A stretch of DNA of 64,000 nucleotides from Diadema antillarum (Eukaryota). Both the position numbers and the translations under genes were made by a program. The number at the start of each line of letters is the position of its first letter. The first letter of the stretch is position 1. The stretch covers positions 62,001 through 126,000 of the forward strand of contig NW_027271282.1 of the NCBI RefSeq assembly GCF_040938485.1, written 5' to 3'. Under the pieces are notes generated by a model, which saw nothing but the letters and a program-made list of their open reading frames with translations, was not told where the DNA came from and searched no databases. Shown piece by piece: positions 301 through 64,000 of the stretch.

Positions 301-446
301 CTATACCCCTTCAGAAGATGGTACTTTTCTCTTATTCATCACCACAGTCGCACAGGTCATCATCGATATGAGTAACACGACTACGAGCAGGGCGTACGTG
401 GTCGATGGCTGCTGAAGAACTCCTCGACGGAGACCAGCAATTGGAC
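301..446 (-). CDS. Paralog A terminal exon: juxtamembrane linker, TM helix, short tail (PIAGLRRGVLQQPSTTYALLVVVLLISMMTCATVVMNKRKVPSSEGV*)
   Basis: Acceptor tttcacag|GT at 447/446; hydrophobic run followed by KRK; stop TAG at 301-303; homologous exons at 37126-37262 and 52199-52335. Confidence 0.85.
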
Positions 447-1003
447 CTGTGAAAAAAAGAAAAAAAAGACTACATTTCTTTTAAGACAGAGTACAGTTTA
501 ACAAAAAAAAAAACACACATCGAAGGTTTAAACAACCACCGACCACACTATGATGCCATATACATTTTATCATTAACTTTTCCAATGTTCATGTATTGCT
601 ATTTCAAGTACTATATATGTATAAACGTATTCAATGTGATAAGCGTGATGAAACGTACGTCAAGTCGGCAGCTGTTAAAGATTATGTTTGCCTGGTCATT
701 TAGGAGTGTTTAAGTTCAAATTTGAATATGATTAGAAATAAAGTGGCAATAATAGCTCCATGTAGCAAGCAGCGACGAAGGTATCATTCATGCTAAACAG
801 TATTTCACATTGCACATTTTGTCAACAAAACACAAAGTTTTTCCTCTTTTTTAAAACATGATGGTGCGGTAAAAGGCATCACATGCCAAGTACAAAATTC
901 CCTTCTGAGCACAAGCAACTTCAAATTTCATCGAAATGTTTACGCTTGCTCAAATAAGGTCGGAAGAAGGAGGAAAATCGCTATACAAAGTATAGATACA
1001 TAC

Positions 1004-1303
1004 CTTTCTCCGAGCCGAAAGTCGGACAATGCTCGAGACTTGAGAAAGTCCAACCAATCCCGTTCGTCCCCGAGCACGTGACATTGATGCATCCGTCGTG
1101 TGGGCGTGGTCTGAAGAGAGCTGAGGCGCAACTAGACGTGGAGAGCGTTGCGTTATCGACTTCGATGGTGTATGTGTGAAGGTGTGGGAACGGCTGGTCA
1201 TCAAGACTAACGTGACACGTTATGACGAGAATGACCTGACCGCCTTCTCCAGTGATCTCCTGGGTCTCGATGGAGAGAATGTTACTCGCTGGGGGCGCTT
1301 GCC
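1004..1303 (-). CDS. Paralog A exon Y2: atypical Ig-like domain (QAPPASNILSI...ITC...CINVTCSGTNGIG...HC)
   Basis: tttag acceptor and G|gtatgt donor; 300 nt, phase 1-1; inside ORF 981..1322; conserved in B and C. Confidence 0.85.
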
Positions 1304-2056
1304 CTAAAAAACAAACAAACATGAAATCACTACATTTACCTTTGTTTAATTATGTCTTATATTTCCAGATAATTTGCATTCTCTGCCATCATGAGCATCA
1401 TCGAAAAACTGAATGCGATATTGAGGAATGGGGTTATGTGTTCACGTTTCCTATAGATCGAGTAACAAGGCGGGCAGCGGCATCTGGAATTATTTGAAGC
1501 TTTGAGACCTGCTTGTCTTGATGGGCAATGGGAAGACTGCCCAGAATTGATGTGACAAGGGCATTGACCATGCATTTGTGGGTTCATTGACGAAACAACG
1601 AAGCGTTCATCCACCATTTCACGTATTTTGCTGCTGGATTAGAGATAATAACACATTGTACTTTTAGTGTCACATTGTACTTTACTTTGTTTATATTATG
1701 CGATATATTGTATACTTTCGTCGGACATGAAATAAATGAAATGAAATGAAATAAGAACTTCTGGTAAATTCATTTCAACGATTCGATTTCTTTCAACTAA
1801 TGGCATAAAAATCTTCTAAAGCGGAGTACAATAGAAGTTGATTATTATCATCTAATTTTTGGGGGAGGACTTGAAATTAACATCAGAATTTAGAGCTGAG
1901 GGTGCTTGATGTAATCTTGATTACAGGAAAAAAAATGTTAATAGAGATGCATGTATTTGGAATGAGGAATTGGCAGAACACATATGGCCGATATTAATTG
2001 CATAGAAATTAATTCCATTTTTTAAGTCCTTCTTCCTCTACGCACAAGATATTTAC

Positions 2057-2335
2057 CTGCTCTTTCCGGGCAGTAATTCTCCGTCGAAACAGTCTTTCCG
2101 TATCGATTTATACCGGTACACGATATAGCGATACATCTGTTTGGGCGATCTTCCATCATCGTCGAAGACGTGCTGGATCTTGATAGAATGTCTCCATCAG
2201 CAGCGATTTCAAACACACTGATCGGTGGAAACGGTTGATCGCTCGGATCTACGTGACACGAGATATTAAGATTTGTCCTCCAGTCATCCTCGTCTTCCGC
2301 GAACTTGATAGAGATGATGTTATGCGCAGGTGGGT
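2057..2335 (-). CDS. Paralog A exon X2: atypical Ig-like domain (DPPAHNIISIKF...ISC...CIAISCTGINRYG...NYC)
   Basis: gtcag acceptor and G|gtaaat donor; 279 nt, phase 1-1; ORF 2022..2378; homolog at 54134-54412. Confidence 0.85.
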
Positions 2336-3119
2336 CTGACGACAACAAAAAGATACAAAAAACAACATGGAAGTACACATTAAAACATGACAGGGGAAAG
2401 GCAAGACTTTGTCAAGACTTAATCTTGAATAAATTAAAGGTCCTGTTTACCTTTGGGAGCAGTGATATTAAAAAAGATATCACATTTGATGCGTATGTGT
2501 AGGTCTGTAGTATTAAAAATATCCTACCTTGCAAAATTATCGCAATAAAGCTTAAATATAAGACGATATCAGTGTATTTCTCAATAAACCGTAACTGCAG
2601 ACGGTTTAGTCTGGAAACATGTTTATTATAACTATTGTTCACGTTTGTGTATTTAACAACACTCAACATCGATTATAGAGATTCAAATTTTGACAGTGGT
2701 TGTTTCTATCCCTAACTCACATTTTAGAACTATTCTAAAGCACTAATGCCGGGTTTTGTTTCATCTGCAAATGGTAAATTATGCCTTTGATACAAACATT
2801 AATATTGAAAAACACTGATGTGAAGGAAGAAGTTTTTCTCCAGTGAAACCAAGGCTCGTTGGAATAATTACATATTCTATTGGTATCTTAATTAATATAA
2901 CAATAGTAACTTTAACATAAAAACACAGAAATGTATAACTGTAACAACAGTGTTGTGATAATGATAAAGACTGATGATAACAACAATAGTAATATCTTGT
3001 AAAATAAAGCAAAAGGGCATTGACTTCGAATGCAAAAATATAATTATTCAGAAAAGAAAAATCTGCTCTGATTTAATCGTGAAAAGCCCACTGTGTTGTC
3101 AGCGGTCTACTTAAATGGG

Positions 3120-4499: not shown

Positions 4500-4790
4500 C
4501 TTTTGGACAGTGTGTTGCCCACGCAGAGGTGATCCCAACGCCGTTAGTCGCTGAACACGTGACGTTGACACACCTGTTTGGTCGTGGCCTGTGGACGGCC
4601 GAAGCCCAGCTAGTTGTAGACAGGACGGTCCCATCAACTCCAATCGTGTAAGAATAGAGGTACGGATAAGGCTGGTCGGTCAGGTTTGCTCGGCACAGTA
4701 TTAGCAGATTCATCAGGCGATCTTTGGTTTGGAATTCCAGAGTTTCGATGGACAAAATGTCAGCTGCTGGAGGGTGGCCGCTGTCTCCTC
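4500..4790 (-). CDS. Paralog A exon Y1: atypical Ig-like domain (HPPAADILSIE...LILC...CVNVTCSATNGVG...HC)
   Basis: tctcag acceptor and G|gtaatc donor; 291 nt, phase 1-1; ORF 4489..4833. Confidence 0.85.
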
Positions 4791-5317: not shown

Positions 5318-5599
5318 CATCGCTTCTTGGACAGTAGTTCTCTGTAGTGATCGTCCTACCGATGTCGTTGATACCGGTGCAGGAGATTTCAACGCATTCA
5401 CTCGGAATGGACTCAAGAGTCACGGACGGGGAGCCTGAAGAAGACTTGATGACGTCATCAATTGCAATCTCGTATTTTCCCATTGATGGAAATGGCTGAT
5501 CACGTGGGTTGACGAGGCACGTGATTTTAAGGCCATCTGTTTCTTGTCCGTCCTCGTTGTCAGCGATCTTGATCCCAATGATATCGTCTGCTGGAGCGT
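5318..5599 (-). CDS. Paralog A exon X1: atypical Ig-like domain (DAPADDIIGIKI...ITC...CVEISCTGINDIG...NYC)
   Basis: gacag acceptor and G|gtaaga donor; 282 nt, phase 1-1; ORF 5265..5606. Confidence 0.85.
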
Positions 5600-6799: not shown

Positions 6800-6988
6800 G
6801 CTGCACTTGCAAGTTTCGGGACCTTTCGCTGCCGATGAGATGACACTGAAGGACGCCCCCATTGTCAGCTGCAGTTGGAGTCAAGGTCAGCTCGCTACGA
6901 ACGTTGTAATATGTGTAATAATTGAAAGCGTAGGCGAGACCAGAGCTGAGAGACGCGTTTGCATATGTAGCAACAGCATTATCGCTTC
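6800..6988 (-). CDS. Paralog A exon: C-terminal half (E-F-G strands) of a C2-set Ig domain (YNVRSELTLTPTAADNGGVLQCHL)
   Basis: aag acceptor and C|gtaagt donor; 189 nt, phase 1-1; S-x-L-T-L-T-P-T-x-x-D-N-G-x-x-L-x-C is the nephrin/CD80-like E-F motif; only one Cys. Confidence 0.8.
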
Positions 6989-7584: not shown

Positions 7585-7893
7585 GGTCTCCTTCACACCT
7601 CACTCCGGCGTCTTCACCATGACGACAGTTTTCACATCCCCATGGCAGATGAGGGCAATCAATCAGAGAGTTTTCAGTTCCTGCACAGGCAACCTCGTCA
7701 AGCCAGATAGGTCCAGATCCCTGCCCAAAGTGGGCGTTACCAAAATGGTTTGAGGCGGATGAGTAGCCAAGCTCTCTGCAAACGGCGTGCGCGTCGTTGA
7801 TATCCCAGCCATCGTCACACACCGTGCCCCACTGCCCGTTGCACGATATCTCAACTCGCCCCTCCCTTTCGCTCGAGCCGCCAGTCAGTCTCA
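7585..7893 (-). CDS. Paralog A exon: scavenger receptor cysteine-rich (SRCR) domain
   Basis: VRLxGG...EGRVEI...WGTVCDDGW...VCRELG...FGQGSGPIWLD.V.C.G.E..L..C...WG..NC.H.EDAGV.C; tacag acceptor and C|gtaagt donor; 309 nt. Confidence 0.95.
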
Positions 7894-10107: not shown

Positions 10108-10283
10108 AGTACTACCGGTTCGGCTGACTTCGCTGGTAGTGGTGAAGCCGTCTGTGATTTGGACGCCATTCAAATACCAGCTTAGAATAGCCGAGCCGTA
10201 GACGTCATTTCCGGAGCACACTGCCGTGACTTCACGGCCAGCCCGGAGAGGAGAGGCTACCTTGAGGTTCATCGTCATGGCAG
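10108..10283 (-). CDS. Paralog A exon: N-terminal half (A-B-C strands) of a C2-set Ig domain (AGREVTAVCSG...AILSWYLNGVQI)
   Basis: ctttcag acceptor, phase 1; Ig B-strand Cys and C-strand Trp. The donor is uncertain: gtgagt after 10108 (phase 0), gtagta after 10116 or gtaggc after 10104 (both phase 1). Confidence 0.75.
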
Positions 10284-10687: not shown

Positions 10688-10748
10688 CACCATGATGAAT
10701 ATTTATGAGAAGAATCCCGACCTGAACCAACGCTCGGTAGTCAATCAT
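10688..10748 (-). CDS. Paralog A first coding exon: signal peptide (MIDYRALVQVGILLINIHHG)
   Basis: AAAATG start, hydrophobic core, G|gtaagg donor; an upstream ttcattcagcag acceptor implies a non-coding exon further 5'; homolog at 47115-47175. Confidence 0.75.
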
Positions 10749-13588: not shown

Positions 13589-15087
13589 TTCACAACAGTA
13601 GGTCAATATAAACTCCGTTAGAGACGTAAATTCGACGAATTTTCGCCCATAGGGCTTTGTCAAGTCAATACATTTAACACTTTATTTTGAAGCAGATCAA
13701 AATACAATAGAAGATGCGTCGTCACTGGTAGCGCGTCCATAACAAAATGCGCACAAACACAAATAGCGCACAAGGGCGCACATACACAAATAGCGCACAA
13801 AGCAGGACGTCACAAAGAAAACTAGGAAGGTAAGGAAAATACAAGACGCGTACAAACTAGGACGTCACAAAGAACAAAGAGAAAACACGTCACAAAGCAA
13901 GGAGGTAGAAAATTGCAGATGAGAGAGAGAGATAGAGAGAGAGAGAGAGGGAGAAGGAAACGAAGATAAAAAAAGAGAGATTATTCCCTAACGGGGAAAG
14001 AACGAAAAGAAACATTCAGTCCATTGGGTTGAAGGCAGCCGAGGCGATGGATAAGTTGTTCTTCTCGTAGTTTGCGAACTTCGTCTGTGCCACCATGACA
14101 GGTCGTCATTACACCGATCTTCAGGTGATTAATGGTGTGCCCGGGCAGGTTGAAGTGCTTGGCCACTGGAAGTCCCGGTGTATTGAGCCTTACTGATCGG
14201 AGGTGTTCGGTTGCGCGATCTGCTAGTCTCCGTTTGGTCTCACCTATGTAGATCTTGTGGCAGGCTGTACAAGTGATCGCGTAGATCACATTCTAAACTG
14301 TACAGCTGAACCAATCGCGAACAACCCAGGTGTATTTAGGACCTTTGATGTGTGCTGCTCTATCCACATGGTTACATATGTGTTGCACCTTCTCCTTCCG
14401 CAGGGTTGGGTACCGCATCCCAAATCTGCTTCAGACTGTGCCTGGACCTTCAAACCCGTGTGGACCAACAGATCCCGCAGACTCCGGTCCTTCTTGTATG
14501 CTACGAGAGGAGGCTCTTTGAAGATTTCCTTGGTGGATGCATCTTCTTGTAAGATGTGTGTGTTGTCCATAATGGTAGAAACGAGCTTTTGCGTTGATGG
14601 GTGATATGTCAACACTAGTGGTACTCTGTCGCTGTTGTGTTGTCTCCTTGGCTCCAGGGCTTCTTGCCGGTTCAACCTAGAAACTTTTCTTGTCGCCTTC
14701 TTGACAACCTATTTAGGGTAGCCACGCCGTTCAAAGAAACCGGCCATTTCATGCGATTTCTGTTGGAAGTCTTCATCATCACTGCAGAGACGGCGGAGTC
14801 TAGTGAGTTGGGAGAACGGAATTGAGCGTTTACAGCTGAGTGGGTGAGATGATGAGTAGTTCAGATAGCAATGCGCATCAGTAGGCTTGTAGTGTACGCT
14901 TGTCTTTATCCGATCTCCTTCTAGGCTGAGTTCAATGTCCAGGAATGCGATCGAGTCCGCGGAAATTTCATGTGTGAATTTCAGTGAGTAATGGAAGTTG
15001 TTGAAGTGGTTGATCAGCTCATTTAGTTGTTCGAGGGAGCAGGATGCAACTCCGACGTAGTCGTCAATGTACCTCTTTAGAAGCCGC
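13584..15087 (-). mobile_element. Penelope-like element, 5'-truncated left arm (RT C-terminal part, GIY-YIG endonuclease, 3' pLTR)
   Basis: RYIDD...FLDI...SVHYKPTD..CYL.YSS.HP (ORF 14709..15215); VIYAITC..C.KIYIGET.R.L..R..EH...N (ORF 13981..14289). Confidence 0.92.
13632..13668 (-). ncRNA. Minimal type I hammerhead ribozyme with U3-A8 core variant in the Penelope pLTR
   Basis: ttgac UUGACAA a gccc uau gggc GAAA au UC|gtcgaa: stem I gac/gtc, 4-bp stem II, palindromic mini stem III. Confidence 0.7.
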
Positions 15088-17180
15088 CCGTAGACCCTCC
15101 TCCTACGGGCAATAAAGCATTTCTTGCAGAAGTTCCCGTCTCCTGACCGGCCAGATGACACCACCATCCTGCGCCTTGCGGAGCTGGTGCTTGGACTTTC
15201 CACCTTCCAGTTCAATGGAAATTTCTACCATCAGAAGAAGGGAGTTGCCATGGGAACTAAAATGGGCCCTTCGTAGGCCTGCCTTTTCGTATGCTTCATC
15301 GAGGAGGCAATTATAAGGAGTTTCGAAGGCCCCAAACCGCTGCTTCTAAAGAGGTACCCTGACGACTACGTCGGAGTTGCATCCAGCTCCCTCGAACAAC
15401 TGAATGAGCTGATCAACCACTTTGAACGGCGTGGCTACCCTAAATAGGTTGTCAAGAAGGCGACAAGAAAAGTTTCTAGGTTGAGCCGGCAAGAAGCCCT
15501 GGAGCCAAGGAGACAACACAACAGCGACAGAGTACCACTAGTGTTGACATATCACCCATCAACGCAAAAGCTCGTTTCTACCATTATGGACAACACACAC
15601 ATCTTACAAGAAGATGCATCCACCAAGGAAATCTTCAAAGAGCCTCCTCTCGTAGCATACAAGAAGGACCGGAGTCTGCGGGATCTGTTGGTCCACACGG
15701 TGTTGAAGGTCCAGGCACAGTCTGAAGCAGATTTGGGATGCGGTACCCAACCCTGCGGAAGGAGAAGGTGCAACACATATGTAACCATGTGGATAGAGCA
15801 GCACACATCAAAGGTCCTACATACACCTGGGTTGTTCGCGATTGGTTCAGCTGTACCGTTGAGAATGTGATCTACGCGATCACTTGTACAGCCTGCCACA
15901 AGATCTACATAGGTGAGACGAAAAGGAGACTAGCAGATCGCGCAACCGAACATCTCCGATCAGTAAGGCTCAATACACCGGGACTTCCAGTGGCCAAGCA
16001 CTTCAACCTGCCCGGGCACACCATTAATCACCTGAAGATCGGTGTAATGACGACCTGTTATGGTGGCACAGACGAAGTTCGCAAACTACGAGAAGAACAA
16101 CTAATCCATCGCCTCGGCTGCCTTCAACCCAATGGACTGACTGTTTCTTTTCGTTCATTCCCCGTTAAGGGATAATCTCTCTTTTTTATCTTCGTTTCCT
16201 TCTCCCTCTCTCTCTCTCTCTCTCTCTCATCTGCAATTTTCTACCTCCTTGCTTTGTGACGTGTTTTCTCTTTGTTCTTCGTGACGTCCTATTTTGTACG
16301 CTTCTTGTATTTTCCTTACCTTCCTAGTTTTCTTTGTGACGTCCTGCTTTGTGCGCTATTTGTGTATGTGCGCCCTTGTGCGCTATTTGTGTTTGTGCGC
16401 ATTTTGTTATGGACGCGCTACCAGTGACGACGCATCTTCTATTTTGATCTGCTTCAAAATAAAGTGTCAAATGTATTGACTTGACAAAACCCTATGGGCG
16501 AAAATTCTTCTTCTTCTTCTTCTGATTAAGTCTGCCTCCTTCAATAGACTGAAGATTCTTGCAGACTGGTGCTATTTACATTATAATACAATTTATTTAC
16601 ATATATTTACAAGCACACAGAAAATTTGACGAAAATAACTAGCCACTGTGATCAACCGTTAGACGGTTTCGAAATGATCCCACAAATGGCGCTGAAACAA
16701 TTTCTGACGACAGGGAATTCCAGTTCCTTACAGTTCTTGGGAAGAACGAATGCCGATGCGATTCAGTTCTCGAATATGGTACCTGATAGGAGTGTGGTTG
16801 CGAGGCTCTCGTCAACTGAGTAGCCTGTTTGATAATATAGTCCTGTGCTGAAAGAGGAGTAAGATTATTGTGTATTTTGTACATCATAATGAGCCTGTCA
16901 TTTTCTCTGCGCTGTTCCATATTGGTCTAATCAAGTTCTTGTAGCATTTTGGTGACACTCGAGGTGTTATGGTAGCGATTTAAAGTGAATCACGCAGCTC
17001 TTCTCTGGACCATTTCCACTCGGTGGATTAGGTTCTTGGTAGATGGGTCCCAAACTGTGGAAGCATACCCAACAATTGGTCGAACCAACGTTTTGTAAGC
17101 TGTGGCTTTAACATCAGAGTAAATTCGTCGAATTTACGTCTCTAACGGAGTTTATATTGACCTACTGTTGTGAATCTATA
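15088..17180 (+). mobile_element. Penelope-like element, right arm in inverted orientation (RT motifs B-C, 270-nt internal deletion, GIY-YIG, pLTR interrupted by a LINE)
   Basis: 15103-15420 reads ...FQFNGNFYHQKKGVAMGTKMGPS*ACLF...KRYPDDYVG; ORF 15738..16175 is GIY-YIG; terminus cctactgttgtgaatctata mirrors 13582-13601. Confidence 0.92.
16508..17120 (-). mobile_element. 5'-truncated L2/CR1-group LINE fragment with (GAA)n tail and 6-bp TSD
   Basis: KATAYKTLVRPIVGYASTVWDP...VQRRAA*...SFFPRTVRNWNSL (two in-frame stops); tail seen as (ttc)n at 16508-16522; aaattc at 16502-16507 and 17121-17126. Confidence 0.88.
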
Positions 17181-18415
17181 CTTTCTTAGGACTCCGAGCA
17201 GAAAGTAATTATTGCTGTTATTCATATATATATATATATATATATGAGATTAAAACCTAAAATGGCATCAAAACGCTTTATCCTGGCGAGGAAATTAAGC
17301 GCATGTTTAAAAAAGAAACAAAAACCAAACATGCGCTTAATTTCCTCGCCAGGATGAATATATATGGGCCGTGACGCGAGAAAAGGGCCCTTAGGGCATT
17401 ATATGATGCAATATTTGGTACCCTGGGGTACCAAATGAAAATTCGCCATTTTGTTGAATTATTTTTTTTTCAGCGCTGTACCCTGGCTTACCAAAAAAAT
17501 GTGTCAAAATAATTTTTAGTATTATTATGCACAAAAATGTTTTCTTATTTGTGATTATGCAACAATTAATGCATGCAAGTGTACTTCGAAAGAAACTTAT
17601 GGTGCTAGTTCATTGCGACGACTTTGCCGTATCCGAATTCGGAATCGGCGTATCTGAATTCGGATACGCATTATAAATAATGGGCATGAGATGGCGCTAT
17701 ACAACGCGGTACCCCGGGTTACAACGGTACCCCGGTGTACGGCGTGCCGAATCATATACCGAAAATGAGTTTTCACCTCCATATTCAATTCAATTCAAAG
17801 GTTTTATTTTCACTTCTTTCAACAGAATGTACAAAAAATATAAATTCGACATACGTTTGAAGGAATGATACTTAGATAGCAAAGGATAGCATTTGTCAAT
17901 AATCATTACAAATTTAGGCATTTTTCATACAGACATATTTATACATTCTGCCAAAAAAAAAGTGGAGGTACCCACTCAAAAGACTATGCTTGTACAACGT
18001 GGGCACCTCACAGGAAGAAAAAAAAAAGGTGAAAACTTAACTACAAGTGTGCGGGATGAAAAGAGAAGTGGAAAAGGGGAAAGGGAAGAAGCATAAATAC
18101 AAGTAAAGAGACGAGACAACTAAGAACAAAAAGCCTAGATCAATCGGTACATTCAAGATCAAACCAACAGAGACTATTAGCCATATTAGAAGTGTAGAGC
18201 ATTAAAAGCGACGAGAAAGTGATATATACAATTGTATGGAATTGCTGATAGCAGAACGCATTATCTGTTCTGTGAAGGCACGTGAGTTTGCAATAGGAAA
18301 AACAGGGGATGCGTTGCGGAATTCCGCGAAAGACGCGACCTAACAAGCCTATGAAAAATCAATAGCATCCTGGTGCTTACAAAACCTACTTACTGAAAAA
18401 AATAAACAAACAAAA

Positions 18416-42852: not shown

Positions 42853-42861
<9 letters not shown>

Positions 42862-42938
<77 letters not shown>
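42862..42938. repeat. (CA)n microsatellite
   Basis: Read directly. Confidence 0.95.
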
Positions 42939-42941
<3 letters not shown>

Positions 42942-46703: not shown

Positions 46704-47114
46704 CTGAAAGAACAATATCAGAAAAGGATTGATGATGAAATACGAATGATAGACATGATGGAGTGAGTCTTATTTCGTTTCCCAAATATGAATATTACAC
46801 AAAATAGGGGAGGAAGGAAATGATTAGAATTAATTAATTATTGCGTATTATGCAAGGGACAGTTATCTGTGTATCCTGTCGATTCATTAAAAAATATACA
46901 ACTAACAAAGACAAGGACGCTGTATTCATAGGACATTGTGTCAATAAATCATATTCACTCCCAGTCTCATAGTGCTGTATGATTTTCCCTTTGTCCCATT
47001 TCCCAGCCATTTCATTGCTGCTTCTCATGTTGTAATTTGTCAATAAAGATCCATTTCAATCTATCATGTAATACTGCAAAATGATAACCAGACTAAAACG
47101 GTCGTGCTCCTTAC

Positions 47115-47175
47115 CACCATGATGAATATTTATGAGAAGAATCCCAACGGAAACCAACGCCTGGCAGTCCATCAT
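47115..47175 (-). CDS. Paralog B signal-peptide exon (MMDCQALVSVGILLINIHHG)
   Basis: AAAATG start and G|gtaagg donor; homolog of 10688-10748. Confidence 0.75.
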
Positions 47176-52198: not shown

Positions 52199-52335
52199 TC
52201 AGAAGATGGTATTTTTTCTCTTATTCATCACCACAGTCGCACAGGTCATCATCGATATGAGCAACACGACTACGAGCAGGGCGTACGTGGTCGATGGCTG
52301 CTGAAGAACTCCTCGACGGAGACCAGCAATTGGAC
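52199..52335 (-). CDS. Paralog C terminal TM exon (...VVMNKRKNTIF*)
   Basis: ttcacag acceptor; ORF 52199..52381. Confidence 0.85.
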
Positions 52336-52553
52336 CTGTGAAAAAAAGAAAAAAAAAACCCATTCTTTTCAGATAGAGCACAGTTAAAAAAATACATCGA
52401 AGGTTTAAACAACCACGGACCAGACTATGATGCCATATACATTACCATCATTAACTTTTCCAATGTTCATGTATTGCCATTTCGAGTACAGTCATTTGTA
52501 TAAACGTATTCAATGTGATAAGCGTGATGAAACGTACGTCAAGTCGGCAGCTG

Positions 52554-53030
52554 TTAAAGGGACATTCCAGACGATTTTCATAATTTCATATCATGTAGTA
52601 CATAAATCGACAACTCCATGTATAGATTTGTGGAATTCATTGTGGTTCTTGAGCAGAGAAACAATACTTTGAAGAAAAAAAAACTTAAACAAATAATTAC
52701 ACTGAACGAGGATGATGACATAGGAGGTTCACATATTTCAGAAATGTAGCAGTGTTATTGCATTAAAATACCGCTTGCTTGCAAGTTATCCTGTGTATAA
52801 TCTATGCATGCCTTCTTCTTTTGTTCTGCTTCCTTGATCCCCAACTCATTCATTCTTTATGGTGACTCTGCCATGTCATCATCCTTGTTCATTGCAATTT
52901 GTTCTAAATTTTGAAAATATCCTTATTCCTCATCCCAATTATCACAAATTCTGAAACTCTGTCCTCAGTAAAACTAATTTATAGTTGTTCAAATGTAAAA
53001 ATCTGAAAACCATCCGGAGGTCTCCTTTAA
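52554..53030. mobile_element. TTAA-TSD MITE (Kolobok-like), specific to C
   Basis: ttaa|agggacattccagacg...catccggaggtctcct|ttaa; empty TTAA in A at 675-678. Confidence 0.8.
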
Positions 53031-53236
53031 AGATTATGTTTGCCTGGTCATTTAGGAGTGTATGAGTTCAAATTTGAATATAATTAGAAAGAAGCAATAC
53101 AAAAGCACCATGTAGCAAGCAGTGACGAAGGTATCATTCATGCTACACAGTATTTCACAGTGCACTTTTTTTTACGCTTGCTCTAATAACGTCGAAAGAA
53201 GCGAGGGAAATCGCTATACAAAGTAGATAGTAATAC

Positions 53237-53536
53237 CTTTCTCCGACCCGAAAGTCGGACAATGCTCGAGACTTGAGAAGGTCCAACCAATCCCGTTCGT
53301 CCCCGAGCACGTGACATTGACGCATCCGTCGTGTGGGCGTGGTCTGAAGAGAGCTGATGCGCAACTAGACGTGGAGAGCGTGGCGTTGTCGACTTCGATG
53401 GTGTATGTGTGAAGGTGTGGGAACGGCTGGTCATCAAGACTAACGTGACACGTTATGACGAGAATGACCTGACCGCCTTCTCCAGTGATCTCCTGGGTCT
53501 CGATGGAGAGAATGTTACTCGCTGGTGGCGCTTGCC
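53237..53536 (-). CDS. Paralog C exon Y2
   Basis: 300 nt, phase 1-1; ORF 53214..53555. Confidence 0.85.
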
Positions 53537-54133
53537 CTAAAAACCAAACAAACATGAAATCAATGTGGGCAGCGGCATCTGGAATTCTTTGAAGCTTTCA
53601 AACTTGCTTGTGTTGATGGGCAATGGGAAGACTGCCCAGAATTGATGTGACAAGGGCATTGACCATGCATTTGTGGGTTCATTGACGAAACATGCCATTT
53701 TGCTGTTGGGTTAGAGATAATAACACATTGTACTTTTAGTGTCACATTGTACTTTACTTTGTTTACATGCGATATATTGTATACTTTCGTCGGAAATGAA
53801 ATAAATGAAATGAAATGAAATAAGAACTTCTGGTAAATTAATTTCAACAATTCGATTTCTTTCAACTAATGGCATAAAAGTCTTCTAAAGCGGAGTACAA
53901 TAGAAGTTGATTATTATCATCTAAATTTTTGGGGGAGGAATTAAAATTAACATTAGAATTTAGAGATGAGGGTACTTGATGTAGTAATCTTGATTACAGG
54001 CAAAAAAAAAAATGTTAATAGAGATGCATGTATTTGGAATAAGGAATTGGCAGAACATATATCGCCGATATTAATTGCATAGAAATTCATTCCATTTTTT
54101 AAGTCCTTGTTCCTCTACGCACAAGATATTCAC

Positions 54134-54412
54134 CTGCTCTTTCCGGGCAGTAATTCTCCGTGGAAACAGTCTTTCCGTATCGATTTATACCGGTACACGA
54201 TATAGCGATACATCTGTTTGGGCGATCTTCCATCATTGTCGAAGATGTGTTGGCTCTTGATAGAATGTCTCCATCAGCAGCGATTTCAAACACACTGATC
54301 GGTGGAAACGGTTGATCGCTCGGATCTACTTGACACGAGATATTAAGATTTGTCCTCCAGTCATCCTCGTCTTCCTCGAACTTGATAGAGATGATGTTAA
54401 GGGCAGGTGGGT
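54134..54412 (-). CDS. Paralog C exon X2
   Basis: 279 nt; G|gtgaat donor; ORF 54099..54455. Confidence 0.85.
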
Positions 54413-56497
54413 CTGACAACAAAAAGATACAAAAAACAACAACATGGAAGTACACATGAAAACATGACAGGGGAAAGGCAACACTTTGTCAAGACTTAAT
54501 CTTAAATAAATTAAAGGTCCTGTTTACCTTTGGGAGCAGTGATTTAAAGAAAGTTCAAGATATCACATTTGATGCGTATGTGCAGGTCTGTACTATTAAA
54601 AATATCTTACCATGTAAAATTATCGCAATAAAGCTTAAATATAAGAAGATATCAGTGTATTTCTCAATAAACCGTAACTGTAGACGGTTTAGTCTGGAAA
54701 CATTTTTATTATAACTATTGTTCACGTTTTAGTATTTAACAACACTCAACATCGATCATAGCGATTCAAATTTTTACAGTGGTTGTTTCTATCCCTAACT
54801 CACATTTTAGAACTATTCGAAAGCACTAATGCCGGGTTTTGTTTCATCTGCAAATGGTAAATTATGCCTTTGATACAAAAATTAATATTGAAAAACACTG
54901 GTGTGAAGGAAGAGGTTTTTCTCCATTGAAACCAAGGCTCATTGGAATAATTTCATATTCTATTGGTATCTTAATGAATATAACAATAGTAACTTTAACA
55001 TAAAAACACAGAAATGTATAACTGTAACAACAGTGTTGTGATAATGATAAAGGCTGATGATAACAACAATAGTAATATCTTGTAAAATAAAGCAAAAGGG
55101 CATTGACTTCGATTGCAAAATATAATTATTCAGAGAAGAAAAGTCTGCTCTGATTTAATCGTGAAAAGCCCACTGTGTTGTCAGCGGTCTACTTAAATGG
55201 GACAGTGCACTCCCATTACAACGAACACGGTTATAACGAAATTTCGTTTCAGCAAAGTAAGAATTCAGGTCCAAAAATTATCATCATTAAAGGCTATGGT
55301 GCAAAATTATTCGCTTATAACGGATACAGTTATAACGAAATTTTCGTCATAACAAAGTCGTTTTCAAGCTCCATTGACAAAGAAAGTCAAAAGAAATGTG
55401 TCCCATTAAAACGAAATGCATATCGCTTACGAAATTACACATCGTATTTGCATGAACAAACGCTTCACATTTCAGTGTTCTTAAGTAGAAATCACTCTCT
55501 TCGTTCGCTCGCAATTTCACACTCCGTTACTGAGGAGAACGTGCGTTATGACATTTTAATCCGAAATGAAATAAGGTTCGTTATTCCTAAGGTTCACGAA
55601 TTCCGTACACCTAAATGACCGTAAATGCGACAATGAAATTGTTTGTTATTTCTAAGTTTTGCTGATCAAAGAATGATATAGGAACCTTCGTTATTAGTAC
55701 TGTTCGCTAATCGGAGAAGGAAATAAGGTTCGTTAATCCGAAAGTGAACAAAAAGGTGAGTATACTAGCATGCCTTCGGAATGACAAAACTTATCGCATT
55801 CAGATTAATGAAAATTCGGAATAACGAACTATTTCTTATCGTAAGATAAACGAACCTCTGGAATAACCAGCCGTCTTTCACTGCTGGATTAACGAGCCTT
55901 CGGGATAATGAATCTTGGGGATAGTGAACCTTCGGAATAATGAGCCTTCGAAATGAGGAGCCCTCGGAATAACGAACCTTTGGAATCACTGTAACCAAAT
56001 CCCATAAATCTCCACTTTTCATACATGTGTTCATAACATAAGCATGAAAATACATACAACTTTATGTTCTCTCTTAAAGGGAACATTTGATCGAAATTAA
56101 TGAGATAGCATGGCATTTAACATTGCTTTTCAAAGTATGATGCGTATCCACCAAACAACGTACAATACACGGAGGGCTCGCGTGTTTTCGTCACACTCCT
56201 GTATTTGTTCGATTATAACGAATTTACGATATAACGACAGAAAACTGCCGGTCCCGAGGACGTCGTTATAACGGGATTGTACTGCATTCCATCATTATTA
56301 CGCTATTGCCAATAAGAAATCTCGCAGGAACAGAGCACATCTAGAACATGATATTCTACAGGTTAATTTTTATCGTCTGTGCTCTCATATCCTTTACTGA
56401 AGATAGACTCCCTTTCTTACGGATATAGAATAATATCATTAAGAAAAAAAATGAAGAAAGGGACTTAGAAGGATCTAATAAGTTTCTCAAGGATTAC

Positions 56498-56788
56498 CTT
56501 TCGGACAGTGTGTTGCCCTCGCAGAGGTGATCCCAACGCCGTTAGTCGCTGAACACGTGACGTTGACACACCTGTTTGGTCGTGGCCTGTGGACGGCCGA
56601 AGCCCAGCTAGTTGTAGACAGGACGGTCCCATCAACTCCAATCGTGTAAGAATAGAGGTACGGGTAAGGCTGTTCGGTCAGGTTTGCTCGGCACAGTATT
56701 AGCAGATTCATCAGGCGATCTTTGGTTTGGAATTCCAGGGTTTCGATGGACAAAATGTCAGCTCCTGGAGGATGGCCGCTGGCTCCTC
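56498..56788 (-). CDS. Paralog C exon Y1
   Basis: 291 nt; ORF 56487..56831. Confidence 0.85.
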
Positions 56789-57229
56789 CTGAGATTGACA
56801 GGTTGATGAGCGAGTTAAGACGTGGTGACATTATATATTAGGGTGAGGCTCATCATGAGAGCTTTTCTCGTTAAAAGAGTAAAACCTGTAATATCAGTGA
56901 TATTCCCTTTAATAGTAATGTCATATAGGAAATTCTTAAAAAGTAGTCATGCATGTTATATCGGCCATTATCGTAAGAATTGAAAATACTACAATTTATA
57001 TAAGTTCAGATATAAAAGCTCTTTATGTAGACGGATAAAGCTTGACAAATGAGTTTGTATGTTGCAAATATTTTTTTCATAAATTTACTGAAACAATGAT
57101 GCGGATTTGAAGTGAAACTGAATGTTTCTTGTAATAGTAATCACATGTCAGTTGGTATCAATCAGCACGGAAAGCTTCAACCCTTTAATAAAGGGTTAAA
57201 GCACCGTCATAATACGTGCTTTAAGAATA

Positions 57230-57796
57230 TTAAAGGACAAGTCCACCTTCATATACATAAGGATTGAGAGAATGCAGCAATATTAGTAGAACACATCAGT
57301 GAAAGTTTGAGGAAAATTGGACAATCCGTTCAAAAGTTACGAACATTTTAAGTATCTGCGCAGGCACTGCTGGAGGAGAAGACTACTACAGTGTGTGATG
57401 TCACATGCGTACAACTATATAAGGAAAATAAAAAGAGAATTTCACAAAGCTTTACTTTTTGAATAAAGTGCAAATTTCTTCGACTTGCTAATGACGTATG
57501 TTAAGGGTAATATTATTCCCCCTGCCTTCTGAAAGAGAGAAGTCGAGTGTTCTTTTATTTTGCGAGAAAAATGGAAATATGTTGAATTTTCTTTATTCTT
57601 TCCTTATATCGTTGTACTCATGTGACATCATGAGCTATACTAGTCTTTTCATCCAGCCGTGACAGAGCAGAAACTTCAAAAATTCATAACTTCTTAACAG
57701 ATTGTCCAATTCTCCTCAAACTCTCACTGATGTGTTCTACTAATATTGCTGCATTCACTCAACCCACATGTCTATGAGGGTGAACTTGTCCTTTAA
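57230..57796. mobile_element. TTAA-TSD MITE (same family as 27952-28519), specific to C
   Basis: ttaaaggacaagtccacc...gtgaacttgtcctttaa; absent in A at ~5225. Confidence 0.88.
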
Positions 57797-57885
57797 TTGA
57801 CAGAGAAAAGCCCAAAGCGTTGCACACGTTCTTCAAAGTCCCATGGACATTATAAAGGGATAAACTTCACAAATTAACGTCTTAC

Positions 57886-58167
57886 CATCGCTTCTTGGAC
57901 AGTAGTTCTCTGTAGTGATCGTCCTACCGATGTCGTTGATACCGGTGCAGGAGATTTCAACGCATTCACTCGGAATGGACTCAAGGGTCACGGAAGGGGA
58001 GCCTGAAGATGGCTGGATGACGTCATCAATTGCAATCTCGTATGTTCCCATTGGTGGAAATGGCTGGTCACGTGGGTTGACGTGACACGTGATATTAAGG
58101 CCATCTGTTTCTTGTCCGTCCTCGTTGCCAGCGATCTTGATCCAGATGATATCGTCTGCTGGAGCGT
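57886..58167 (-). CDS. Paralog C exon X1
   Basis: 282 nt; ORF 57833..58195. Confidence 0.85.
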
Positions 58168-58418
58168 CTGTCACGTGACGAACGTTTATAGGCAACAGAA
58201 ATTTGTTCAGATTAAAAGATGGCGATCATGATGACGAAGAATTAAAAGATAAAGAGTTACAGATTAAAAGCAAAAGTCACAATCAATGATTAAATGGACA
58301 AAATCACTCTTGCTAATGTATTGCATTACGAAATTGAATCCTCTGCTGTGGGAATCGATCCCTTAAAACGAATTGAAAATGCTTTGAAGTGCTTACCCTG
58401 CATATGATACTGTGAAAG

Positions 58419-61400
58419 CAGTGGCGTATCTCGGGAAAACGGCGCCCGGGGAAAGCGCGAAAATTGCGCCCCTAATTTCTGAAAAAGTGTTCAACCCCAG
58501 CCCCATCCCGGTAGGGACTTAAAAAAAAAGTCCACATGATATGCTTTTTCAAGCACTTAAAAGGGGTCTTTTGAGAGTGTTTTAAAGCCCCCTCACACCT
58601 GAGCGAATGTAGGGGGACGAAGGGGGGACGAATGGGAAAAACGCACGAAATGCGCGCGAATTCAACGATTTCAAATAAAATTGCCTTCAAATCATCCGAT
58701 TATAAACTAAAGTCAAACATGATTAACGAACGGTAAGCGTAGGATAAACATGCGAATGATAACGATTTTTCGGTTCACTTCTTTGAGTAAATTGCGGCCG
58801 AAGGCGAGCGAAGGGTTGATATGACCCGATAAGACGAACGAACACTCATGAGCAATGGTTTGATATGGCGTGCGATTGGAAACGAAGACGAAAGAATAGA
58901 TCAGGCGTTCTCGTACGGGGAGCATAAAAGCGACCAGGTCCGTCCAGATTTCAGTGCGGCCAGAGAAATCATCCACGCAACATGAGAGGAAGAGGCAAAA
59001 GCAGAGGGAACGCACGAAAGACTGCGTCAACCGGGAAGAAATCCACAACCTCGGAATGCTCACAACCACAGACTGAAGTGCCGCCTCCTCCTGACAGTCC
59101 CGCAGAGTCACACTCACAGTCTGCCAGTCCATAGTCACGGTCTCCTACGCCCGCACGGTCTCCAACGCCGCCTCTACGCCAACATCAAGAGGATGCTGCC
59201 AGTAATGCCAGCGGTGATGATGAGGATAGAGATGGTCACAGAGAGCAGCTCAGCATTCGCCAATTTTTTCGTCAGGTCATTCGCTCGTATTCGTATCACT
59301 TTGCAATCCATAGTTTGTCATGGTATCTCTTAGACTTGCCTTCGTGTATGCATCGCTATTCAAATTTAGTAAAAGTCAATCTTGGTTTCCATTCGCATAG
59401 AAGATGGCAAGCGGAAAAAAAAACCGTTTGTCATAGTATCTTGGTTTCTATGCGCAAGTCATATTATTAGTCATCGGGTTGCTTCGTTTAGGGTTCTTTC
59501 GAGATCGTTCCACCTTGGCAAAAGCGCGATGAGGGACTATGCGTGACAATAGCACACGAACAATAAACGAACGATTACCGCACACTGAAAAAGAGATGCA
59601 AATTCAAGCAAATGACAGACGATTTTTCAATTCGTCGGGAAATTTCAAACATGTTCCAAAATCCAGTGCGAATTTGAATAATCGCAACTGTTCAGAAGGT
59701 GTACGAACCAAACACGAAGGGTAAATCTATCAAATACCATTGAAAACGATTTTTCAAAAAATGCCTATCGCCAGCCATAGCAAGTCATATTTCAGGCAAT
59801 TCGCTCAGGTGTGAGGAGCCTTAAGATGTAATAAAGTTTATTAAATTTTGGCGAGCGAGCGCAGCGAGCGAGCCGAAAATTTTTGTATTTCAGCTTACAA
59901 AAAACAAGGAAAATCTTGTCATTTTTTTTGGTTTTTAAATCTTACAATTCTAATCAAGATATAGCGACGGCCTTATAGATAACGATTTATACCAACAAAA
60001 TGCGGACTTGAAAAAATACTCTAAATTAGTACGAGCGAGTGAGCCGAAATTTGTATATTTCTGTGTAGGTAACATTGCACTTATCTCATAGTTCGTTGTA
60101 CTTGTAAATCATACAATGCTGGCACACTGTTATATGCAATGGCTTGCTCTGTATATAAAATAACAGATCATGCGACAACTGAATCCAAAAGCTTGCTAAA
60201 CTTACAAATCAGTGTGAGAATTTTCTGAATATGTTCGTATATAGGAAGTATGAGATTTTCTTCAATTGTATGGTTGATAATTCAAGTAATTATTAACATT
60301 ATGATATAGAGATGGCTGGATTTATGAATGGTGATAATATATACTGACAAACTTTAAAAAAAATGACAAAGCATAATAGTTAATGCAAACGAGCGCAGCG
60401 AGTGAGCTCCTTTTATTTTTCACTTAGGTTGCAAATAGTTATATCGTATAGCTCTCAATAATGATTATGGTGGCTAATTGATAAAAAGCATATATAAGTT
60501 GGAGAGAGGCATATATAAGTTCTAGAGAGTCAAAATTCTTGTATTATTGCAGAGGAAACGCATGGGGTTTTCTTCAGGACATGTATTTGGTTGTGAATCA
60601 CGTTTTTCCTATTCGTCACTGCTAAAACTGCGCCCTTGTACAGTATAAAACTTTTTTTGTGGTCACCGCAAGGCAACTACATAATGTACCTTACATTATT
60701 TTGGCAGAACTGCATAAAAAGTGGATAATCAAGCACCCTTAGTCGTCAAACATGAAACTTGCACTTTCAATTTCTCATACTTATGTGTGTCGCCCCATTG
60801 TGTCAAAAAGGGGTATTCAGCTATAAACATTGTGTATACTAATTTGTTGTTGTTCTTGTTGTTTTTAATGAGGAAATGTTTGTGATTACTTACTAGTATA
60901 CATAATTTTGAGGTATACATTGAATTTCTAATCAAGTAAACTGAAAAACTTAGAGGTTTTGTTTGTTTTTCTTTGTCATGCATTTATCTGTGATATTCAA
61001 TTTGTCATCATCATCTTACTTTTACACATACTCAAGTTTGCGTCAACTGAACACCTTTCTCTATAGACCCTTTATCTGCCTTTATCCATTTCTTACATCT
61101 TATCTTTTTGCTGATTATTCTCTCACTTCCATCCCTCCATCCTACCACCCCAACCCCCCTCTGCCCCCCCCCCCAATCGCTCTCTATACATATCTCCTTC
61201 AGAACGGCTCAACTTTTGATTTATTTCAGAACGACACCAAAAAGAACATGCGCATAATTTAACTTTTTCAAGTGGTGTTTTTTTTTTAATGAACACCGAT
61301 CTGCATTGTTACCCTGATACAATGCTTATTATTTCCATTATAAAATGATATGTGTGAACAACGTCAACAATAAACATTGTCATTTTGTCCGCGTAATTAT

Positions 61401-61969
61401 CATGTTTTGTTCTTATCTTGTTTGATTTGGTTTTCTGCACTCCCCCCCCCCCCCCCCCCCGCCAATGAAGAATGTGACGTCCGGGTGAGGGTTTATTTGT
61501 TTGTTTGTTTTTGTGCGTGTGTGTAAACAGCAATAAATGTGTGAACAATAAACACGGTCATTTTGTCCGCGTCATCATGATGTTTCGTTCTTATCTTGGT
61601 TGAGTTGGCTTTTCTGCACCCCCCCCCCATGTGCGAAACCGTTTGCGCCCTCTTTTGATCCAATCGGCGATCGCTTCAGAAAGAAAGCAGTTGCAGCCGC
61701 TGCACCGTGTAACATTTTGCCTGCTAGATATAAAATGATATGTGTGAACACAATAAACATTGTCATTTTGTCCGCGTCATCGTCACGTTTTGTTCTTATC
61801 TTGTTTGATTTGGTTTTCTGCCCCCCCCCCCCCCTCCATCCCCCCCCCCCCGGATCCGGGCGAGATGTTTTGATTTGTGGTTTTGTTTTGTTTTTTCGTT
61901 TTTGGCGCCCCCAAGGAGTGGCGCCCGGGACACTTGCCCCCCTTGCCCCCACCCCCAGATACGCCACTG
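58419..61969. mobile_element. 3.55 kb non-autonomous hAT-like element in an intron of C
   Basis: 13-bp TIR cagtggcgtatct / agatacgccactg; 8-bp TSD tgtgaaag / agtgaaag (7 of 8); three ~190-bp subterminal repeats at ~61350-61830. Confidence 0.8.
58586..59821. mobile_element. PIF/Harbinger-like element nested in the hAT element
   Basis: TIR agccccctcacacctgagcgaat / attcgctcaggtgtgaggagcct; TAA TSD at 58583-58585 and 59822-59824. Confidence 0.75.
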
Positions 61970-62705
61970 AGTGAAAGCACATTTTTGGAAATTCATGCCC
62001 AAACAAGAAAATGCATGCTGACATCCGAATTTGAATCATGTTGTAGCAATGAATCTAAATGAATTTGAAAGGACTAACCATAAAGTTGTTTGATCAAAGT
62101 CACTCCACTGTTTCAAAGATACCATTTGAATGCACATAAAACGAAAGAGGAAGATTATCTTTCCAGGGGAAAGGGAAAAACCTACATGAACATATTCTGT
62201 GAATGCAATGTTTTGAGTTTCAACTTCTATACCTCGGAAAGCACCAGCGTAGAGGATTTTCGGCTAGGAAAAATGTTGTTTATCGTAGGATTTGAAAATG
62301 GAAGCAGAAATCAAGAAAAAGTTGACCAACAGGTCTGATTTCCGTATCCGTGTCTTGCTATAGGCCTACTACATATGGCAGTAAGTTCATTTTTACAGCA
62401 AAGTGTTTTCTTTCACCTCACGGAAAATTTAATAATGGTTTTTGCTTTTGTATACCTTGTTATTGTAGATATTCCGGATCAACTTTTATAACCTCATGAA
62501 TTTTATGTGATCATGACGTCATCACATCATATGACGTCATCATATGCCTGCAAACCAGTATAGCTTTCCTCAGCACTTGCTCAAAGTCATGAAGTGAAGA
62601 GGATGGGAAGAGGATGGTGTGAACATTATAGACATAGATACTCATGACGTCATTTTGACTCGCGCAGGTCCTATCGAAGTTAATACTCAACAAAAGTGTA
62701 CTTAC

Positions 62706-62894
62706 GCTGCACTTGCAAGGTTCGGGACCTTTCGCTGCCAATGAGATGACACTGAAGGACGCCCCCATTGTCAGCTGCTGTTGCAGTTAACGTCATCTCG
62801 CTACGAACGTTGTAATACTTGTAATAATTGAAACCGTAGGCGAGACCAGCGGTAACAGACTCATTTGCATATGTAGCAACTCCATTATCTCTTC
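62706..62894 (-). CDS. Paralog C Ig C-terminal-half exon
   Basis: 189 nt, phase 1-1; ORF 62680..62934. Confidence 0.8.
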
Positions 62895-63492
62895 CTTTAC
62901 ATGAGAAACAGGAAAAAACATAAAACAAAGACAAAAAGAAAGGAGTTTGAATTACATTTGAAGTTAACCTTGTATGATACCTATCAGAAAATTGAAAAAC
63001 GATATTATCTAAGGCATTTGACAGACTTTGAACAAAATCCTAAATGAGTCATAGAATCAATTTCGAAAAACATGCTATTGGAACTCGCATATCCTGTTCA
63101 CTGTATTTTTTTTTTATTGCAACGACATGTATTTTTCAGAATGTTACTCTTTTATTTTCTTTTTGTATTTGTAACTGTTTAAAACTAAAAAATTCTTCGT
63201 GTCACTGTTCAAATCAGATATCTAGTTTAATTTGAAGATAAGAAATCAGATTTCCTTACTCGCGATATCATAAAATAGACCTGTCTTTATGCATTTATGG
63301 TTTTTCATAAGAAATAATTCGGCATTCTTTGAGAGAATTTTATAAACGTTGTTGACAGAATAATTACTTGTAATAAACCAAACACTATCACGGTTCGAAA
63401 GTGATGATACAAATTAGTTATTTATCATTTAACAGTGCGCTACCTTGCTACGCATGCAGTCATGAAATACGTGAATAATGGAGCAGACTCAC

Positions 63493-63801
63493 GGTCTCCC
63501 TCACACCTCACTCCCGCGTCTTCACCGTGACTGCAGTCGTGGCATCCCCAGGCATAACGAGGGCAAGCGAGCAGAGAGTTTTCAGTTCCAGCACAGCCGA
63601 CGCTGTCAAGCCAGATAGGTCCAGATCCCTGCCCAAAGTGGGCTCCAGTATAATGAGCTGAGGCGGATGAGTAGCCAAGCTCTCTGCAAACGGCGTGCGC
63701 GTCGTTGATATCCCAGCCATCGTCACAAACCGTGCCCCACTGCCCGTTGCACGATATCTCAACTCGCCCCTCTCTTTCGCTTGAGCCGCCAGTCAGTCTC
63801 A
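63493..63801 (-). CDS. Paralog C SRCR exon (gene continues beyond the window end)
   Basis: 309 nt; tacag acceptor and C|gtgagt donor; ORF 63440..63916. Confidence 0.93.
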
Positions 63802-64000
63802 CTGTAATAACACCACATTCGTAATATACTACAAACAAACACACAACTCTTAGCCAAACAAAACTCCTTGAGCACACAAACACCTCTCCCTCACACAAAT
63901 TCATTTGGCAGGACAATGTTTTCTATCATTTTCATGTTTCTTGAATACAAGCATATTCATACATTGGGCCTACTACTCAAGCTGGTATCATATCATGTCG

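Follow-up and report, generated by a model that had tools for sequence, protein, structure and literature searches.

A tandem array of putative surface-protein genes with an SRCR domain between two Ig-like exons in the sea urchin Diadema antillarum

Three genes of a six-gene array

The window analysed here is a stretch of 64,000 nucleotides from the sea urchin Diadema antillarum (positions 62001-126000 of a contig that we call C394). It contains three paralogous genes, A, B and C, all on the minus strand, which were recognised by self-comparison and by the conservation of open reading frames (ORFs). The genes share a plan of one module per phase-1 exon, in the order leader, first immunoglobulin-like (Ig) exon (Ig-a), SRCR domain, second Ig exon (Ig-b), two or four stalk domains, transmembrane (TM) segment and tail. 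An earlier note, made from the letters of the window alone, had described three same-strand, head-to-tail paralogs with an SRCR domain between Ig halves, a repeated stalk and a TM segment, and both the self-comparison and the exon models confirm this arrangement.

In the self-comparison the unit of A covers approximately 1-13600 of the window, that of B 31800-47940 and that of C 47990-64000. A and C are 92.5% identical over 1466-5234 and 53561-57239, B and C are 80-84% identical, and the minus-strand stop-to-stop ORFs are both conserved between the units and internally paralogous. The unit length of about 16 kb given in the earlier note is correct for the step from B to C but not for the step from A to B, where the period is about 37 kb because of transposon insertions in the spacer.

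In order to find the extent of the array, the nine exons of A were placed by tblastn on the window, on the 62 kb below it and on the 80 kb above it. A, B and C turn out to be part of a six-gene head-to-tail array (g1, g2, A, B, C and g6) at 28.6-148.3 kb of the contig, again all on the minus strand. Two genes, g1 and g2, lie below the window, while the 5′ exons of C, followed by g6, lie above it, as expected from the earlier suggestion that the array goes on beyond both ends. The same nine exons matched no family exon in the contig at 1-28 kb or at 148-206 kb, and both boundaries of the array fall inside the examined stretch (1-206 kb).

Gene A has nine exons that join to 2025 nt (674 aa) with a single terminal stop. 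All its acceptors are AG, all its donors are GT and all its internal exons are phase 1-1. The splice sites were picked by reading frame and by conservation among the copies, and the resulting model reproduces exactly the one proposed earlier (2025 nt, 674 aa, donor at 10116). The joined model served to check frame and length; searches and folds were run on single exons or on public proteins. The exons of A, in order of transcription, are:

10688..10748, minus strand: exon 1, start codon and signal-peptide-like leader (20 aa) with a phase-1 GT donor, conserved in all six genes
10116..10283, minus strand: exon 2 (Ig-a), first half of a C2-set Ig with the B-strand Cys and C-strand Trp; the sole array copy with an in-frame phase-1 GT donor
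7585..7893, minus strand: exon 3, one complete SRCR domain with 8 Cys, group-B type, phase 1-1
6800..6988, minus strand: exon 4 (Ig-b), second Ig half with the E-F-G strands and a D-x-G-x-L-Q-C motif
5318..5599, minus strand: exon 5, stalk domain D1 (Y type)
4500..4790, minus strand: exon 6, stalk domain D2 (X type)
2057..2335, minus strand: exon 7, stalk domain D3 (Y type)
1004..1303, minus strand: exon 8, stalk domain D4 (X type), modelled as a 7-strand beta sandwich
301..446, minus strand: exon 9, juxtamembrane segment, TM helix, K-R-K stop-transfer, 8-residue tail and stop

The other two genes of the window are laid out as follows:

37126..47175, minus strand: gene B, with signal peptide 47115-47175, Ig-a 46540-46703 (no GT donor), SRCR 41957-42265 and Ig-b 41147-41335
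continued, minus strand: gene B, with D1 40144-40422, D4 39008-39307, and TM and stop 37126-37262
52199..64000, minus strand: gene C, 3′ part, with SRCR 63493-63801, Ig-b 62706-62894, D1 57886-58167 and D2 56498-56788
continued, minus strand: gene C, with D3 54134-54412, D4 53237-53536, and TM and stop 52199-52335
contig 130015-130648, outside the window, minus strand: Ig-a and signal-peptide exons of gene C

From the SRCR exon to the stop both genes are open with canonical splice sites, over 403 aa in B and about 594 aa in C. The number of stalk domains differs between the genes, with two in g1, g2 and B, and four in A, C and g6. Thus the four domains that the earlier note placed after the Ig and SRCR head hold for A and C, but not for B, which has only two. 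A separate observation concerns an intron of B (window 38001-38683), where a 270 bp unit is directly repeated at 99.6% identity and accompanied by a perfectly inverted arm of 142 bp, the mark of a very recent local rearrangement.

Protein modules and the donor after Ig-a

The SRCR domain is detected by Pfam PF00530 in the ORF at 7535-7939 on the minus strand, with 114.6 bits (E 2.9e-33) against a cutoff of 26.1. Its exon is 309 nt long, phase 1-1, and encodes eight cysteines that are conserved in all six paralogs. Group B of the SRCR superfamily is defined by eight cysteines and a single-exon domain, and this exon fits that definition.

The flanking Ig exons are harder to recognise singly. Against the Pfam family C2-set_2 (PF08205), which has a gathering cutoff of 21 bits, each half taken alone scores below the cutoff, Ig-a with 19.7 bits over profile positions 14-64 and Ig-b with 14.9 bits over positions 56-80. 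In P0182, a RefSeq relative in which the halves are joined without an SRCR domain, they match as one domain, with 25.2 bits over positions 14-80. The hallmarks of the fold occur in all six genes, namely the B-strand Cys and C-strand Trp in Ig-a, and D-N-G-G-V-L-Q-C in Ig-b. Three further RefSeq proteins (P0034, P0036 and P0047) have Ig-a, SRCR and Ig-b joined in that order. A complete SRCR exon set between the two Ig halves makes an unusual domain architecture.

Each stalk domain carries four cysteines, and the domains alternate between two subtypes, X and Y. The four D exons have no Pfam match at E <= 0.1, the ESM Atlas gave no usable match for the stalk domain, and a Foldseek search with it against the PDB returned nothing at E <= 1e-3 (E-values >= 2e-3). 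An AlphaFold2 (AF2) model of D4, with a predicted local distance difference test score (pLDDT) of 89.5, has seven strands in a beta sandwich. Its best structural match by VIA-align is an FN3 domain of gp130 (Z 10.2, root-mean-square deviation 2.7 over 91 residues); the top FN3 matches have Z 9-10, and Ig C2 domains follow within one Z unit, e.g. the SYG-2 Ig at Z 9.0. The model thus predicts an Ig/FN3-like sandwich with no choice between the two folds. The description "atypical Ig-like" in the earlier note fits the seven-strand sandwich and the closeness of the Ig C2 matches, but it is FN3 domains that match the structure best.

Conservation within the family is highest in the juxtamembrane and TM segment, a pattern that hints at a membrane partner. 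Past the K-R-K, the protein ends with I-x-I-F in five of the genes and with an 8-residue frameshifted version in A, and RefSeq relatives have the same type of tail end as the array genes. Tails in the family measure just 4-8 residues, and within them there is neither a signalling motif nor room for one, whether like an immunoreceptor tyrosine-based activation or inhibitory motif (ITAM/ITIM) or of another kind.

Several results weigh against reading the array as a set of genes for complete type-I surface proteins. An in-frame phase-1 GT directly after Ig-a is found in A only, so that the donor at 10116 is correct for A but does not carry over to the other array genes. C has an in-frame phase-1 GT six codons earlier, made by a synonymous AGC-to-AGT change, and in g1, g2, B and g6 there is no in-frame phase-1 GT donor between Ig-a and the next stop. 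Both orthologs from Diadema setosum are likewise donor-less at this point. A full protein, from signal peptide to TM segment, can thus be predicted on paper for A alone. The RefSeq models of allelic copies are truncated, beginning at the SRCR exon, with leaders that do not resemble signal peptides. In addition, the AF2 model of residues 20-260 of P0036 (from a 44-row alignment) has pLDDT values of 70-92 in the SRCR part and 30-60 in the Ig parts. Because this fold is confident for the SRCR part alone, the domain-in-domain head, i.e. an SRCR domain held within one Ig sandwich, stays an inference.

Two of the truncated RefSeq models, P0098 and P0185, are alleles of C and g2 on a contig of 4.19 Mb. 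Their first exons map inside the Ig-a-to-SRCR intron and encode no signal peptide, and one of the two carries the name "neurotrypsin-like". Since these first exons lie within that intron and contain a stop in most of the C394 copies, we take them for artefacts; the names and starts of both models are probably products of the prediction.

The five genes other than A contain an extra 1.0-1.8 kb immediately after the end of the Ig-a exon. The donor-bearing sequence that adjoins Ig-a in A and in P0182-type genes lies downstream of this segment in the five. Several candidate solutions were tried and rejected. The extra 1.8 kb segment, considered as a transposon, is not a dispersed repeat, as copies of its full length are confined to this array and its alleles. 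A search for GT or GC donors in frame for Ig-a in the five genes yielded only weak GC sites. U12-type AT-AC boundaries were inspected by eye, as was a phase-2 donor within the Trp codon, and both were rejected on grounds of frame or stop codons. No hidden exon with a match to the linker of P0047 or P0182 turned up. Finally, a hydrophobic leader inside the extra segment is identical between g6 and D. setosum and similar in g1 and B, but is absent from g2 and its ortholog, so it is no general exon.

One way to read these facts is that most members of the array are 5′-defective genes or young pseudogenes. In that case the full protein would come from A-type copies only, and duplication and conversion would have carried the others along. 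This would account for the missing donor in g1, g2, B and g6, and for the position of the extra segment, exactly at the end of the Ig-a exon, which leaves the old donor sequence 1-1.8 kb downstream. The separation of Ig-a from SRCR in RefSeq models of allelic copies fits as well. The coding sequences argue for the opposite. There are zero stops or frameshifts in the 46 exons of the six genes, and hallmarks of pseudogenes are wanting, as the exons are all open and the introns are kept in the six genes and in D. setosum; the missing Ig-a donor is the exception. Ig-a itself is open in every copy, with a ratio of nonsynonymous to synonymous rates (dN/dS) of 0.2-0.5 among the five genes other than A, and the donor-less state is kept in the D. 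setosum orthologs while dN/dS over a whole coding sequence is 0.20. Skipping Ig-a also preserves the frame; because all exons are phase 1-1, a leader spliced straight to SRCR would remain in frame. On balance we regard the decay of most array members as unlikely.

Haplotypes, the A-B spacer and selection

A second contig, C66, carries near-identical exons at approximately 549-636 kb, and the 10 kb blocks that flank the C394 array map to it collinearly at 96-100%. Over 3.4 kb the region of A is 99.4% identical between the contigs; in the other genes identity is 92-96%, and some pieces are mosaic. C66 is thus the allelic haplotig of the C394 array. It has five genes where C394 has six, and searches with D4-type and Ig-b exons found no counterpart of B. 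As B also shares 90-94% identity with g1 along most of its ~10 kb, it is a recent duplicate present in one haplotype only. In the C-like copy of C66 (locus L004) we observed no D3 exon within 1.5 kb of D4, and stalk length may therefore differ between alleles too. Between C394 and C66 the stalk and TM exons are 96.4-100% identical in nucleotides, with synonymous differences per site (pS) of 0-0.09 that exceed the replacement differences per site, and one Ig-b allele pair is 98% identical.

The hifiasm assembly of D. antillarum is described in its genome paper as about 1.75 Gb long (1.73 Gbp in the abstract), with 2,964 scaffolds and a GC content of 38.5%. A later Diadema genome paper reports that both parental haplotypes are still present in this assembly, and gives a haploid genome size of ~703 Mb, a heterozygosity of 2.52% and 84.4% duplicated BUSCOs. 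Searches with the exons for copy number and clustering, a check proposed in the earlier note, gave the six-gene array described here and many same-strand runs on other contigs. Genome-wide, Ig-b is represented by at least 150 intact exons among 358 candidates, and Ig-a by at least 150 exons among 404. Counts from the 1.75 Gb assembly are inflated about twofold by the retained haplotypes and should be roughly halved for this reason, which puts the family on the order of 75-180 genes per haploid genome.

Retained haplotypes also raise the question of whether the three copies in the window are an artefact, produced by uncollapsed haplotypes or by a mis-join across a gap in the assembly. The difference between 1.75 Gb and a haploid genome of ~703 Mb lends this some weight, and there is indeed a run of Ns between A and B, so that the A-to-B join across it cannot be verified. 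The copies, however, are tandem on one contig, 70-92% identical and different in exon number, and are therefore paralogs rather than haplotypes. The true allelic sequence is C66, which is 96-100% identical in the flanks and has a five-gene array of its own. D. setosum shows the same head-to-tail layout. An artefact is thus extremely improbable, and the concern that the copies might be uncollapsed haplotypes can be set aside.

The spacer between A and B, swollen with transposons, contains the following features:

13634..31800, no strand: the A-B spacer
13634-14736 and 15420-16510: inverted pair, 97% identical, in a GC-rich stretch (49.5%)
18625-21576, minus strand: apparently intact LINE ORF2, 983 aa uninterrupted, with endonuclease (Exo_endo_phos) and reverse-transcriptase domains
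23070-24721 and 24748-26428: direct tandem duplication of 1.7 kb, 95.6% identical
26562-27623, minus strand: ORF1-like ORF of 353 aa, whose ESM-Atlas neighbours are transposon ORF1-like clusters
31104-31234: assembly gap (N run)

An ORF at 15738-16175, in one arm of the inverted pair, has a weak match to GIY-YIG (20.8 bits, below cutoff), and such a head-to-head pair suggests a Penelope-like element. On neither side of the gap does any frame stay open beyond 33 codons, and the nearest family exons are the TM exon of B at ~6 kb and the signal-peptide exon of A at ~20 kb. The gap breaks no exon, and the true distance from A to B is uncertain. Another observation is that copies of one short low-complexity repeat, which match each other on both strands, are dispersed through the spacers, in the window at 28586-28647, 29232-29340, 29972-30055 and 33735-33839.

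In D. setosum the ortholog of g6 is followed by an intergenic stretch orthologous to C394 at 135.9-130.7 kb, and then by a gene that in its 5′ part has 90% identity to g2. Since this g2-like gene comes directly after the g6 ortholog, either D. antillarum gained A, B and C or D. setosum lost them. The g6 gene and its ortholog have nine exons that are open in both species. Their introns are 80-90% identical, the 3′ end of the locus is 93% identical and, over 660 codons, dN is 0.023 and dS 0.115, for a dN/dS of 0.20. We also noticed that RefSeq annotates only the part from D1 to TM of this ortholog (P0077, 450 aa) at OZ188205.1:20159362-20185633 (L050). Intact exons for the leader, Ig-a, SRCR and Ig-b are present 1-8 kb upstream of the annotated part, and a second family gene begins 5.5 kb downstream of the ortholog.

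Pairwise dN/dS among the six genes of the array ranges from 0.05 to 0.7, with values near 0-0.1 for the TM exon, and the coding sequence is under purifying selection. Within the SRCR exon, replacement changes cluster at about residues 47-53 and 71-90, where the ratio of replacement to synonymous differences per site (pN/pS) is 0.8-1.0 compared with 0.07-0.3 in the core. The loop pattern indicates relaxed constraint, and it is not demonstrably positive selection. The earlier note had proposed dN/dS per exon as a check, and no exon is consistently above 1, with paralog values of 0.05-0.7, an ortholog value of 0.20 and SRCR loops at ~0.8-1.0.

Identity along the genes is mosaic. For example, A and g6 are 93.6% identical at the 5′ end and 80% in the middle, while A and C are 74% identical at the 5′ end and 92-95% in the stalk, and this indicates gene conversion. 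Whole-gene duplication and unequal crossing-over make the array grow and shrink, while gene conversion swaps segments between its members. The term "rapidly evolving", used in the earlier note, is therefore apt for the gene content, given six versus five genes between haplotypes, the g6 and g2-like order in D. setosum and gene conversion, but not for the coding sequence, which is under purifying selection.

Relatives and possible role of the family

In order to find relatives beyond these loci, we built a profile from 28 aligned stalk domains, taken from the window and from other loci, and searched it against 1.84 billion representatives. The search gave 20 matches at E <= 1e-26, followed by a gap until 1e-7. 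Every strong match with a source looked up is a D. antillarum or D. setosum protein, listed in RefSeq among the "uncharacterized proteins". A word-based search with a D. setosum member returned 52 relatives, all from Diadema. Multi-SRCR proteins flooded a search with an SRCR-containing member, in which no protein from outside Diadema extends beyond the SRCR part. So far as can be told from public data, the family is restricted to the genus Diadema. We found no paper that describes it, and in the two Diadema genome papers SRCR genes are treated only in a general way.

The Diadema proteins in RefSeq (for example XP_071480511.1, XP_072182308.1 and XP_072173864.1) belong to the same family, with 50-100% identity per exon. 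One of them, XP_072173864.1 (P0036 above), contains leader, Ig-a, SRCR, Ig-b, three stalk domains and TM in a single model. These RefSeq models are unnamed and undescribed, most are truncated or begun at the SRCR exon, and Ig-a is joined to SRCR in 3 of about 70; among the models retrieved none comes from contig C394.

A further comparison is with echinoid proteins of the Ig superfamily (IgSF). Weak matches of the stalk profile (E 5e-5 to 9e-4) include echinoid nectin-like or C2-set IgSF proteins, and in two of these the match spans the stalk domain in full and falls behind the annotated V and C2 domains. On this ground the stalk domain is probably a very diverged Ig-type domain. The split Ig resembles the same kind of protein, as its halves, when joined in P0182, share the C2-set_2 match with nectin/CD80-like IgSF members of echinoids (for example LOC105445209 of Strongylocentrotus purpuratus, LOC129267421 of L. 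pictus and "nectin 1a-like" of D. setosum). The similarity is marginal, however, and these proteins have no SRCR domain, no four-cysteine pattern and no tandem expansion.

Among vertebrate type-I membrane proteins, CD5, CD6, WC1 and CD163 have group-B SRCR ectodomains with several SRCR domains in tandem and long signalling tails, and the WC1 genes form multigene arrays. The Diadema family differs from these in having one SRCR domain, an Ig and beta-sandwich stalk and almost no tail. Closer to home, 253 of the 359 SRCR genes of S. purpuratus are clustered, and the commonest partner domains of SRCR in sea urchins are EGF-like, Sushi, F5/8 type C, WSC and CUB (PMC10855680). The Diadema family resembles this superfamily in its single-exon, group-B type SRCR domain and in a large, lineage-specific expansion, mostly in tandem arrays, but places a single SRCR between two Ig exons and adds a four-cysteine beta-sandwich stalk.

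Taken together, the genes in the window are, we estimate with a probability of roughly 0.65, three members of a six-gene array that belongs to a Diadema-restricted family of type-I surface proteins with a putative ligand-binding role, evolving by birth and death and by gene conversion. We propose that the SRCR head would be displayed on a stalk of variable length, where it could bind an extracellular ligand. Because the tail has no signalling motif, such a protein might be a non-signalling binding or adhesion molecule, or it might signal with the help of a partner in contact with the conserved TM region. The analogy of other SRCR expansions in sea urchins would make an immune role plausible.

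The Alr proteins of Hydractinia invite a different comparison. They are clustered, lineage-restricted, Ig-like surface proteins whose domains escape sequence-based detection; they have no SRCR domain, and many of them have ITAM/ITIM-type tails and extreme polymorphism. The Diadema family is likewise clustered, lineage-restricted and Ig-like, but it has an SRCR domain and almost no tail. No cnidarian protein occurs among the profile matches with a source looked up, nor among the matches of the word search. The earlier note had limited the similarity to analogy, and the lack of detectable homology in either search agrees with this.

By such an analogy, the array could be a polymorphic allorecognition or individual-specific immune system, with a logic like that of Hydractinia Alr or Botryllus fuhc and with heads diversified by selection. 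Gene content that differs between two haplotypes, mosaic gene conversion and SRCR loops in which pN/pS comes close to 0.8-1.0, compared with 0.07-0.3 in the core, are what one would expect of such a system, and so is the 0-9% of synonymous differences between alleles in the stalk exons, set against a genome heterozygosity of 2.52%. Nevertheless, no stretch has dN/dS clearly above 1, the A alleles are 99.4% identical over 3.4 kb, the tails of 4-8 residues lack ITAM/ITIM-like motifs and there is no sequence relation to Alr. Sea urchins are also solitary, and we know of no fusion or rejection biology that would need such a system. We judge this explanation very unlikely, and an allorecognition role, so far as the analogy goes, has no support.

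A bolder version of the ligand-binding proposal is that the family forms a Diadema-specific recognition repertoire, in which an SRCR head carried in an Ig loop would be diversified between individuals by gene gain and loss, conversion and stalk length, and would serve in the discrimination of pathogens or of self and non-self. We offer this as a rather unlikely possibility. If true, the conserved donor-less Ig-a would suggest that the first Ig half is included in a regulated or unconventional way.

Diadema antillarum, a keystone grazer of reefs, has been struck repeatedly by disease die-offs. The Diadema genome papers name innate-immune gene families as the reason for needing a reference, and the family described here is large, genus-restricted and present in RefSeq only as unnamed models. 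The differences between haplotypes and between species show that copy number must be typed, and not single-nucleotide polymorphisms alone. If its members are expressed on immune cells, the family would be a candidate for survival association studies.

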